A stretch of DNA of 63,982 bases, filler included, from Olpidium bornovanus S191 (lineage: Eukaryota; Fungi; Olpidiomycota): assembly GCA_017911155.1 (NCBI GenBank). It is 33 parts of 33 records of this genome, joined end to end, with 100 filler letters (N's around TTAATTAATTAA, not from the genome) between each part and the next. Parts side by side here need not be neighbours in the genome. Positions count along the whole stretch, not along the records: positions 14,095 to 15,967 come from JAEFCI010004227.1; 32 more parts are not named here. One strand, 5' to 3'. Both the position numbers and the translations under genes were made by a program. How positions within the stretch are numbered: the first letter of the stretch is position 1; each line of letters starts with the position of its first letter. Shown here in pieces: positions 12,622-16,525 of the stretch. The notes beneath the pieces were generated by a model that saw nothing but the letters and a program-made list of their open reading frames with translations, searched no databases and was not told where the DNA came from.

Positions 12622-15466
12622 NNNNNNNNNNNNNNNNNNNNNNNNNNNNNNNNNNNNNNNNNNNNTTAATTAATTAANNNNNNNNNNNNNNNNNNNNNNN
12701 NNNNNNNNNNNNNNNNNNNNNCCGGTGCGCTGTGCCGATGACGTCGGAGGTTCGGGCGGCGCGACCGGGAGTTGATGCTGCGAGCGAGCGCGCTTGCGCC
12801 AGCGGTCGCCGAGGGAGCTCCCAGCGGGCGGCGGGCTGCATGTTATCACGGAGTTTGTTTTCCTGGCGACAAACGCTGCACGGAGCCGGGCGGGCACAGT
12901 TGGCCCGTAAGCAAGCCGGAAGCGGCGCAAATGGGACGTGAACCCCGCCGGCAAAATGTCCTGCCGCCCTTCATCTTTGGCCCCTTCTTCCCACGCACAC
13001 CTCCCCCCCCCCCCCCCCCACCTCTTTTGGATGCCCAAACGCACATATTATGCGATCGGTGACCGGGGCGTTGCAGGCGCCTTCGACGGTAGAGGCGTAC
13101 ATCGGAGCAGGTCCGCCTGAACGGGAAGCTTCGGCTCGAGGACTTTCGCGGGCGCCGTCCGTCCGCCGCGGGGTGCCGGTTGCCTGCCGTGTGGCCGTCC
13201 GCCGCCGCCTTTCGACGTCCTCCGCGTCCGGTGTATTCTGGTCTTCATATGGCGGCCGGGGTTGTCAGGATGAGAAGGGGTCGCGTGGTGTTCCGACCCC
13301 TTCCACTTCTCCCACTTCCCCCTCCTTTTTCCAGTTCCCCCCCCCCCTTTTTCCCCCCCTCTTCCCCCTTCCTTCTTCCCCCCCCCCCACCTCCTTCCGC
13401 ATCACCCTTACGTCCCTTACTCCCCCTCCGGCCCCCCTCTTCCACGCCCGTCTTTGGTTTTCTTTTTCGACTTTCTGTTCCGCCCACACATCCTCCCCCC
13501 GAAGGGAATCCCCGCTGCCGCCTCACACACCGCGCAGAATGCCGCTCCTGGAGCAGCTCTGTTGTCACGTTCGGTACATCGTAGATCCAATGCGCGTGGC
13601 AGCTTATCTGTCCCGCAGGTTTGTCTCGCTTGCTCTTTCTCTCTCTCTCTCTTTTGCCCCCGCCGTTGCCGCCGCACATCAGCGCACGAGTCCTCTTGGA
13701 CGCATGGTCGCCCCCCTCCCCTCCTCTCTGCCCCCTTCCGGCTGCGGGCACTCACGGCCCACGGGGCCCCGACCCCTGACGTCAGACCAGCCGGTCGGGG
13801 CAAACCCGCGAAATATCGCGGCCCTCCCCGGGGTCTCACGAAGCCTAAGCATGTTCGCGCCCTCCCAACCAGACCTGCCGAGCCGCTTCCGGTTTGGCTT
13901 TTCCAGTTTGTCAAAAGAAAAGGAAAAACAAAGTTACCTCAACTCCGCTTCGGAGAAGAGTTGGGGCGCTTTTTCCTTTTACCGAAGAACCCAANNNNNN
14001 NNNNNNNNNNNNNNNNNNNNNNNNNNNNNNNNNNNNNNTTAATTAATTAANNNNNNNNNNNNNNNNNNNNNNNNNNNNNNNNNNNNNNNNNNNNAACGTG
14101 ACTCGAAAGGCGCGGGAATGGGTTGTTAGCCAAACAGACTTCCAGATGCGTCCAGTAACAGTGCTGCTGGTGTGGGTGGCCACGTGGACCTTTTCCCGGG
14201 AAACTCGAGCGCATGTGACCTTCCCCTTCCGTCCCTTCATAGACATCGGCCTGCCCGCGCACCTTTAATAGATACAACCTCCGGCGTTCCCTTGCCAGCG
14301 GGGGAAGAGGGGGCGTCGAGAGCGGCCGCTTCGGCGGGTCGGGCAGGACCCTCGCGTGGAGTTCAAGCGGAACCGAGACAATTCCTTGGAAATCGGAGGA
14401 GCTTCGTTGCCGTCGGGCTTTGTCCGCCTCCTCCTCCGCGTTGGCGAGCTCGACTTTACGTGCGCACGAGGCAGAACACAAGAGCGGAATGGCGATATAG
14501 TTGTGTTGCAGCGTCGCGCCAGTCTACCTCAAGCCTCGTGGTCTCGGCTACGGCTTCGGTGAGGACGGTCCGCATCCCGCTCCACCTGCTGGCAGCGCCA
14601 GACCTCCGCAGCACGATTATCAGGGCATGAGTTGGAACCGTTTGTCAGGCAGAAGAAAAAAAAAAACCGAATTAGCCCCCCCCCCCCCCCCCCACCCCCC
14701 ACCCCGCCAATTGCTTTTGCTTGCTCCTCAAGAGCTGCGGTTCAAGCTTTTCTATCCTGATGCCGGCCACGAAAGAATAAAAATTCCTTCAGAGCGAAAG
14801 TGCGCGACGGCCGTTCCTCCCCTTTTCTCCCAACTACCTCGACGCCATGCCGCTCGCTACTTTCCGTGCAACGTGGCGTTTCACCCTCGGCACGTGACGG
14901 TACCCGACGAAAACATATTCCGATCCGAGGACGTTGAGATATAGAAGGGGGGGGGGGGCGGCGTTGAAGCTATTCGGGAAGTTGGATCGGCTGCGGGACG
15001 TGGGAAAGGTGGGGGAGGAGGGTGGGGGGGAAGGGGTGGGTGGTTTCCGCTCGCGGGCACTCTAGACAGCGCAGCAGTTCACGGATCACCGGGAGCCACC
15101 GTGAGTCCCCTTTTCTCCGCCAATCGCGGAATGCACTCGTTCGCTGCTGACGTCTTTGCCGCACTCCGTTCAACCCTTCCGCCATCTATCACAATCCGGC
15201 GGGACACTTTGGCAGTGTTGGCTGCACGCGACAGCAGAGCACGCCGTACTCTTGACCGCAGGGCACCCTCCGACTGGATATCTTTAGGCGTGCACCAGCG
15301 CAGCCCGGTCGTGCATATATTACATACATTTTATACAGTGTGCTCCTGCGCTATCTATAAAGCGAGGCGCGAGCCAGCGCAGCCCCGTTGTGCAAGATTA
15401 CATAACGTGCCAATGACCGTGAGAAACCGGTATAATATATACAGTAGACGGTTGGGAACGCCGCTA

Positions 15467-15850
15467 CTACTTCTTGGTAATGCTAGTCGTGGCGCCGGTC
15501 TCATCACTACAGACGACGTTGCAGTTGCTGTTCAAAACGCACAGTTCGTTTGGACCGGTGCCGGGCGGGCCTGGTACACGAGTGCCGGGCTTGTCGCACA
15601 CAGCGCGCGCCGGAGCCGCCGCCGGAGGATCGTTGATGGTTTCCAGTGGCCCGACGATCCTGAGGTCGCCGCTACTCCTAACATTACAGACGACGACGCA
15701 GCCGTCCTCCACAGTGCACACATCGTCTTCGGCGCCGGGCACGTTATCTATGCGAGTGCCGCGCGGGGGACAAGCCGGAGCGGCAGAGGCTGTGCTCGCG
15801 ACAGCGAAAGCCGCAAAGAGAAGGGAGAAGGCAGCTCCAGAGCCGCGCAT
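15467..15850 (-). CDS. Small secreted cysteine-rich protein (127 aa) with two tandem 4-Cys modules; candidate effector
   Basis: Signal-peptide-like MRGSGAAFSLLFAAFAVASTASA; 8 Cys; internal repeat C-xx-x-GTR...C-x4-C-x-VVC; double TAG stop; upstream TATATAA. Confidence 0.85.
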   Translation of the reverse strand: MRGSGAAFSLLFAAFAVASTASAAPACPPRGTRIDNVPGAEDDVCTVEDGCVVVCNVRSSGDLRIVGPLETINDPPAAAPARAVCDKPGTRVPGPPGTGPNELCVLNSNCNVVCSDETGATTSITKK

Positions 15851-15937
15851 GGTGTTACAGTGTTTTTGAAGGGAGAAGAAGTGGTAAAGTGTTGTGGTGA
15901 GGTTGAAAAAGGTCCTTTTGACGACGGGGGGCGCGCC

Positions 15938-15947
15938 ATTATATAAT
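15938..15947 (-). promoter_or_regulatory. TATA-like box upstream of the secreted protein
   Basis: Minus strand CATTATATAATG about 90 nt upstream of the ATG, in otherwise GC-rich DNA. Confidence 0.45.
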
Positions 15948-16525
15948 GCCCCGCGGAGTCAGCGGCANNNNNNNNNNNNNNNNNNNNNNNNNNNNNNNNN
16001 NNNNNNNNNNNTTAATTAATTAANNNNNNNNNNNNNNNNNNNNNNNNNNNNNNNNNNNNNNNNNNNNCATGCTCGTTGCCGCGGCGTCATTCACGAGAAT
16101 GATTCACACTGCCGGAAAAGTAGCAGGAAAGGACCGGGGTTGTGCGCGAACCGCGCAAAATCCAGCTGTGTTTTCTTTCTGAGAAGCATCTTCGCCGCAC
16201 GTTAGCAACAACTGGACCGTGTTCACGCAAATGTCGCTATCTTCGGGTTTTCTTCTGCACTCCGCGTTTTTCCTCTCGTTTCCCATCTGCCCTGTAGAGT
16301 CTTTATGAAGATCCGGATGTTTCACTGCTGGCTCGGCAGCCTGTCCGCCTGCAGCGGAAGATCTCAAAACATTATGCCGGATGTAAATCGTCAGCAGCCC
16401 GTACCGTCAACCTTTGCTGGGATTTCTGACGGAAGCGGGTTCTTAAACGCTGCCATTTTCAGAATAATCGATATTCTCGCTCGACCAACGCTTGGTGATC
16501 GTTCCGCGCGTTGAGCGTTGTGAAC

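Follow-up and report, generated by a model that had tools for sequence, protein, structure and literature searches.

The window, i.e. the whole stretch of 63,982 nucleotides (filler included) that was analysed, contains at positions 14095-15967 a piece of 1873 nt, and on the minus strand of this piece lies an open reading frame (ORF) of 127 codons plus stop, at 15467..15850. The original prediction had located a gene here, which stands, but had left the strand unstated. The 127-residue product holds eight cysteines (Cys), at residues 27, 45, 51, 55 and 85, 104, 110, 114. Codons 1-23 (15782..15850, minus strand, as are all parts of the gene named below) encode a signal-like peptide with Arg2, a 13-residue hydrophobic core and A-S-A before the predicted cut. 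This is followed by a first module (residues 27-55, 15686..15772) with the spacing C-x17-C-x5-C-x3-C and a predicted beta hairpin (44-48/52-56), an inter-module segment (residues 56-84, 15599..15685) made up of an 18-residue stretch with a predicted strand (63-68) and then a Pro/Ala-rich stretch, and a second module (residues 85-114, 15509..15598) with the spacing C-x18-C-x5-C-x3-C. A Ser/Thr-rich C-terminal tail (residues 115-127), ending in K-K, and two stop codons TAG TAG, at 15469-15467 and 15466-15464, close the coding region (15464..15508).

The flanks carry the elements expected from the original prediction, which had named a TATA-like box, a double TAG stop and an AT-rich 3' region. 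The TATA-like box TATATAA (15939..15945) lies 89 nt upstream of the ATG; it was read from the sequence, its putative role follows from its position only, and the repeat scan found it enclosed by a short palindrome (15931-15954). A pyrimidine-rich 5' leader (15851..15910) leads into the start context CACC-ATG and has no upstream ATG of its own: the sole upstream ATG overlaps the TATA box, and the ATG at 15850 would be the first of the transcript. On the other side, an AT-rich 3' UTR (15307..15463) is delimited by the end of an RNA contig at 15307 and by base composition, with a GC content of 0.505 at 15295-15494 vs about 0.6 elsewhere. It contains ATAAAA (15329-15334) and TGTAA (15320-15324), respectively 22 and 13 nt before the contig end, and a second TGTAA at 15398-15402. 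In this region, in and just past the 3' UTR, a 30-nt direct repeat (15286-15315 and 15365-15394, span 15286..15394, without assigned strand) occurs in two copies 83% identical and 79 nt apart, each adjoining a TGTAA, and may represent a duplicated polyadenylation region. As to the organism group, the flanking signals are ambiguous: the CT-rich leader and CACC-ATG resemble those of filamentous fungi, and TGTAA is found as in green algae.

Transcription and orientation of the locus

The locus is transcribed, unspliced, and bounded at about 15307 and about 15900. In RNA run X1, a 499-nt contig is collinear with 15307-15805, with no gaps or joints and at a word depth of 148; contigs of the same run over the neighbouring 14095-14521 have a depth of 5-24, and none lies over 14536-15291. 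Of the words of 15307-15910, a fraction of 0.95 is present in run X7, and therefore the transcript reaches about 15900. Moreover, the number of sampled words found in run X9 is about 59 both for the whole piece (0.30 x 198) and for 15307-15910 alone (0.95 x 62), so that its RNA is confined to the latter stretch. The fraction of the 15307-15910 words that is present amounts to 0.69-0.95 in nine RNA-type runs from three studies and to 1.00 in a 2012 run, while it is 0.00 in two runs (X17 and X18) of the same study as the best holder, X7. The transcript is thus present or absent depending on the sample. The collinear contig agrees with the claim of a complete and intronless gene, and transcripts, whose lack had been named as grounds to abandon the original prediction, are found both in this contig and in the nine runs. 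The small gene is real, and it had been described correctly in substance.

A mini-intron, namely a 23-nt GT..AG stretch after module 1, was considered and rejected: its length is not divisible by 3, and the RNA contig runs through it without a break.

RNA contigs carry no direction, and we infer a minus-strand orientation of the transcript because several sequence signals agree with it. The TATA box and the pyrimidine-rich leader are at the end with the higher coordinates, 15850 holds the first ATG downstream of the TATA box, in CACC-ATG context, and ATAAAA and TGTAA are found just before the end at 15307. Additionally, GC content by codon position in the Cys frame follows the order GC3 (0.68) > GC1 (0.62) > GC2 (0.60). 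Read in this direction, transcription would start near 15900-15910, downstream of the TATA box, pass through the coding region from the ATG to the double stop, and end near 15307.

Two further observations regard run X1. A 34-nt contig at a depth of 900 (vs 148 for the gene contig) matches, with one mismatch, 15546-15577, i.e. the codons of the Pro/Gly-rich loop of module 2, and the gene contig itself stops abruptly at 15805 without a splice signal. Together these suggest a second near-identical sequence, either an allele or a paralogue, in the X1 transcriptome.

The predicted secretory start and the duplicated modules

The N-terminus consists of Met-Arg, a 13-residue core of Ala/Phe/Leu/Val with a best 9-mer Kyte-Doolittle score of 2.73, and then S-T-A-S-A. 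This is the n/h/c layout of a cleavable signal peptide, and because positions -3 and -1 are occupied by small residues, cleavage probably takes place after residue 23, in agreement with the signal-like peptide of about 23 residues described earlier. This call combines a crude sequence rule with a reading of the n/h/c layout; the ORF passes the rule, has an A-x-A type site, and is the only one to pass among the seven ORFs of the piece that begin with ATG and have 60 aa or more. As a control, 1716 ORFs from Markov-resampled sequence were submitted to the same rule: 0.8% passed, and none of those that did also reached 100 aa and 8 Cys. A sequence scan of the protein found no other hydrophobic stretch, KDEL-like end or hydrophobic C-terminus. 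The protein thus fits the class of small secreted cysteine-rich proteins, which have an N-terminal signal peptide, no further membrane segment and no retention or anchor signal, and in terms of size and Cys content (fewer than about 300 aa, high and even Cys number) the mature product has 104 residues and 8 Cys (7.7%). This mature protein is acidic, with a pI of 4.6 and a net charge of about -4, and contains no Trp, Tyr, Phe or His.

The two tandem four-Cys modules of the original prediction are borne out by the eight Cys and by a significant internal repeat. The halves of the protein align with a local score of 64, vs 26 +/- 5.4 (maximum 52) for shuffled sequences, none of which reached 64 in 2000 trials. 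Identity extends to 14 of the 33 aligned residues (42%), and the invariant positions comprise all four Cys, G-T-R, P-G and V-V. Two details had to be amended. The spacing, given previously as C-x3-GTR-x10/11-C-x4-C-x-VVC, is counted here as C-x3-GTR-x11/12-C-x5-C-x3-C, and the layout of module, linker and module, in which both modules and the Pro/Ala stretch are indeed present, had omitted the 18 residues after module 1 (56-73), part of which is predicted to form a beta strand.

The internal repeat is a duplication of the DNA and as such it is visible in other frames too, with a z of 7.2 in the Cys frame and 6.3 in an antisense ORF of 281 codons; the repeat alone therefore does not fix the reading frame. 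Counted by codon position (1/2/3), the units differ at 15/13/7 sites, and dN/dS between them is 2.8 in the Cys frame. We discarded this last value as evidence, as the counts are not significantly uneven (chi-square about 3, 2 df) and hence allow no conclusion on selection or frame.

The antisense ORF (15101..15946, plus strand) has a GTG start, with an ATG at 15131 or 15413, and overlaps the whole gene, which raises the question of whether it is the real coding sequence and the Cys protein its antisense shadow. It is the longest ORF in the piece, shows the repeat as well, and has a dN/dS between repeat units below 1 (0.44/0.61). Nonetheless, both its first ATG (15131) and its stop (15944-15946) lie outside the transcript, it crosses the AT-rich stretch resembling a 3' UTR, no promoter-like sequence lies upstream of it, and GC3 is lower than GC1 in its frame. 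Moreover, it has no Pfam match and no homologue in 5.8 billion protein clusters. We consider it extremely improbable that this is the coding frame; the plus-strand ORF is most likely a shadow ORF due to the GC-rich sequence.

Relatives and predicted structure

The original prediction had set the Cys spacing apart from hydrophobin, CFEM, CBM1, CBM18 and LysM, and hmmscan against Pfam-A agrees, with no hydrophobin, CFEM, CBM1, CBM18 (hevein), CBM14 or LysM at E up to 10. The sole Pfam line is gamma-thionin (PF00304), at E 1.1 and over 17 residues. We rejected membership in this family of plant defensins because of the score (10 bits vs a cut-off of 25.1), the four Cys per module and the lack of C-x-C. 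The likeness lies in the local C-x5-C-x3-C spacing. However, the half of the cysteine-stabilised alpha-beta motif formed by G-x-C and C-x-C is absent, as is the fourth disulfide, the C-x3-C is placed in a predicted strand rather than in a helix, and the protein is acidic instead of cationic.

Among PDB sequences the sole match is PevD1 (E 0.03), which spans the signal peptide and the start of module 1 and leaves both Cys there unmatched; a profile of the two modules gave no match among PDB sequences at E up to 10. A word-indexed search of 5.8 billion protein clusters returned 0 matches. An exhaustive HMMER search of 1.84 billion representatives returned one, P0001, a repeat protein of 2801 aa with eight copies of a 27-residue segment that align with residues 48-74 at roughly 24 bits each, with both Cys replaced. 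P0001 was rejected as a relative: we take it to be a repeat-inflated chance match, with an E-value that stems from eight copies and no Cys matched. Scans of metagenome, viral and prokaryote contig collections gave 0 matches, and an Rfam search gave nothing. Exact look-up of the full and of the 5'-truncated product in a public protein collection failed, and therefore the gene seems to be unannotated and missing from public protein sets. Neighbours by protein language model reach at most 0.75 for unnamed and at most 0.52 for named clusters, which is below the level that shuffled sequences also reach. The claim of a new family is not supported so far, in that Pfam, the PDB, the 5.8 billion clusters, the 1.84 billion representatives and the contig collections yielded no further member. 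Given that no relatives are detectable, the gene is, as judged by sequence comparison, a single lineage-restricted orphan, with no family demonstrated in the collections searched.

Structure prediction adds some detail. AlphaFold2 run on the single sequence models the whole protein poorly (pLDDT 60), with two hairpins (44-48/52-56 and 102-106/112-116) and the strand 63-68. The second module together with its 5 preceding residues (80-114) reaches a pLDDT of 81. In such a model, the C-x5-C-x3-C register would place its first and third Cys opposite one another on the two strands and leave the Cys in the turn free for the Cys of the loop. Foldseek searches against the PDB gave a best E of 0.67 for the whole protein and of 8.7 for module 2, AlphaFold DB clusters a best E of 0.03 with a TM of 0.22, Swiss-Prot models a best E of 7.8, and the ESM Atlas TM values of at most 0.38. 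VIA-align in wide mode reached a best Z of 3.2 for the whole protein and found no chain at Z of at least 2 for module 2. A confident match to a described domain family, which would have spoken against the original prediction, was thus not returned by searches with the structural models in any of the five libraries. Such small domains are hard for fold-search tools, and so the lack of a match is not a proof of a new fold.

The absence of relatives bears on the possibility that the locus is transcribed but has no functional protein, being instead a non-coding RNA or a young ORF in which the Cys pattern is a by-product of GC-rich duplication. The frame has no conservation support, as no homologues were found in any collection searched, the protein-language-model recognition score of the Cys protein is low, and substitutions between the units lack a significant codon-position bias. 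Furthermore, GC-rich DNA yields many long ORFs, as illustrated by the seven in the piece. Set against this are the position of the start codon, which is the first ATG of the transcript, in good context and followed by a canonical signal-like peptide, and the outcome of the resampling control, in which the combination of signal-like start, length and Cys number never occurred. Moreover, all four Cys are kept between units that share only 42% of their residues, and module 2 folds with good model confidence. We therefore regard a locus without functional protein as unlikely.

Another reading takes the two units as copies of an undescribed mini-domain of about 30 aa (C-x3-GTR-x11/12-C-x5-C-x3-C), with a new fold that lacks an aromatic core and with more copies in this genome and in relatives. 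It is possible, though doubtful. If true, the units would belong to secreted bivalent binders or inhibitors that form a genuinely new family and evolve fast outside the Cys scaffold. In any case, two points are of some interest: the clean internal duplication, and a compact aromatic-free four-Cys module whose fold is predicted with confidence in the absence of an alignment and matches no solved or predicted structure.

Possible roles of the putative secreted product

The gene most likely belongs to a well-known operational class, that of orphan secreted cysteine-rich mini-proteins. Orphan proteins that are small, secreted and rich in Cys number in the hundreds in genomes of fungi, oomycetes and many protists. 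We lean slightly towards the reading that the ORF at 15467..15850 is a real single-exon gene encoding a secretory pre-protein of 127 residues, whose mature form is a disulfide-rich orphan that binds an extracellular protein target. According to this scenario, the pre-protein would be exported and lose its signal peptide of about 23 residues, releasing the 104-residue product. Each unit would present a Pro/Gly-rich loop carrying the conserved G-T-R, and a single Cys would anchor this loop to a short beta hairpin in which the three remaining Cys (C-x5-C-x3-C) are located. Within a module, the Cys most likely pair as two disulfides, giving four per protein, and the two resulting rigid mini-domains would be joined by the flexible Pro/Ala stretch. 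Outside the cell, such a protein could act as a rigid bivalent binder of a protein target; in one concrete version, it would be an inhibitor-like, double-headed protein presenting the conserved Thr-Arg loop. A function as binder or inhibitor is a guess from these general properties. Sugar binding and membrane-active antimicrobial action fit less well, the latter because the mature protein is acidic, which disfavours a cationic membrane-active peptide.

With a conserved, presumably exposed G-T-R close to the first Cys of both units, the inhibitor version recalls the double-headed inhibitors (Bowman-Birk, tandem Kazal and pacifastin), which likewise are secreted, consist of tandem disulfide-locked modules and expose in each module a loop with a basic residue beside a Cys; we take this likeness as a lead only. 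Modules have four Cys here and 6 to 7 there, the spacing differs, and neither Pfam, nor PDB sequences, nor the fold searches returned a Bowman-Birk, Kazal or pacifastin match. A cluster of pacifastin-like proteins was reached with a feature score of only 0.51, and the structural match has an E of 0.16 and a TM of 0.22. A function as a double-headed canonical protease inhibitor appears quite unlikely.

The original prediction had also proposed a glycan-binding lectin, and a related option is a chitin-binding protein. Two tandem disulfide-rich modules would permit bivalent binding, and the nearest named protein-language-model clusters include CBM14, although at a score of only 0.52. Small Cys-rich sugar-binding modules, such as CBM1, CBM14 and CBM18/hevein, stack aromatic side chains on sugars. 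The chemistry of a sugar-stacking lectin is disfavoured here by the absence of aromatic residues, and also of His, from the mature protein; additionally, Pfam gives no match to any CBM or to LysM. A lectin is therefore a most improbable identity for this protein.

Alternatively, the product might be a structural protein of the extracellular matrix or cell wall, for example a hydroxyproline-modified protein of an alga, with glycosylated Pro stretches and with Cys modules that cross-link. The Pro/Ala and Pro/Gly-rich stretches and the Ser/Thr-rich tail would suit such a role. So would the TGTAA 13 nt before the 3' end, given that TGTAA is the usual poly(A) signal of green algae. However, the usual Ser-Pro repeats are missing from the Pro stretches, which are short, neither a GPI signal nor an anchoring domain is present, the GC3 of 0.68 is modest, and no pherophorin or extensin match appears in Pfam. 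We consider a structural role very unlikely.

Finally, the protein could be a host-targeted effector of a parasite, acting as a secreted mini-protein in the extracellular space of the host, where it would hinder defence. It is small, Cys-rich, orphan, internally duplicated and, by prediction, secreted, and its RNA is abundant in some samples and absent from others of one study. Repeat-containing and Cys-rich secreted proteins are a recognised class of effectors in the account given in PMC4617103. Nonetheless, secreted proteins of free-living fungi, algae or amoebae can show these features just as well, and no known effector motif or family matches in Pfam. Small secreted cysteine-rich proteins of fungi and oomycetes are a category and not a homologous family. 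A Pfam scan of the other ORFs in the 1873-nt piece revealed no conserved marker gene. We view the effector reading as tentative and rather unlikely. Its expression ranks among the higher ones in its neighbourhood and is on or off depending on the sample, which makes the gene a fair candidate for a secreted factor of some kind: if the organism is host-associated, it is a reasonable effector candidate, and if not, it is one more lineage-specific secreted mini-protein.

Within this class, a useful comparison is Cin1 of Venturia inaequalis, a candidate effector that is both a small secreted cysteine-rich and a repeat protein and that, as described in PMC4617103, shares with the present protein a signal peptide, a small size and imperfect tandem repeats with a linker. 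Further shared features are a lack of homologues outside a narrow lineage and condition-dependent expression. Its eight repeats of 52-64 aa are described there as helix-loop-helix units in a three-helix bundle (PMC4617103). The present protein differs in having two units of about 50 aa, each with a predicted loop and beta hairpin, and the two proteins resemble each other neither in sequence nor in structure. A point in common is the number of Cys, which is four in each Cin1 repeat.

The remainder of the piece offers a few observations of its own. The region 14095-14521 is transcribed in run X1, at the low depth given above, contains no ORF with a Pfam match, and is probably a UTR or non-coding exon of a neighbouring gene that runs off the piece. 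Two RNA-run contigs diverge from the piece at the same four bases (CATG, 14212-14215): one of 2330 nt matches 14095-14215 and then continues into unrelated sequence, and one of 386 nt agrees with 14212-14521 only after its first 75 bases, which are unrelated. Such a pattern is compatible with an insertion or a structural difference accompanied by a 4-nt duplication, or with a wrong join when the piece was assembled. A GT after 14214 could serve as a plus-strand splice donor, for the 2330-nt contig only. Further along, a C homopolymer tract occurs at 14676-14705 (about 17 C, within 30 nt at 86% C), and G-rich tracts lie 250-310 nt downstream of it, at 14947-14962 and 15004-15043. The region between the C and G tracts is untranscribed in run X1. 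The tracts form imperfect inverted repeats, with arms of 29 nt that are 83% complementary, and on the G-rich side, where the sequence repeats with a period of 13 nt, G-quadruplexes could form.
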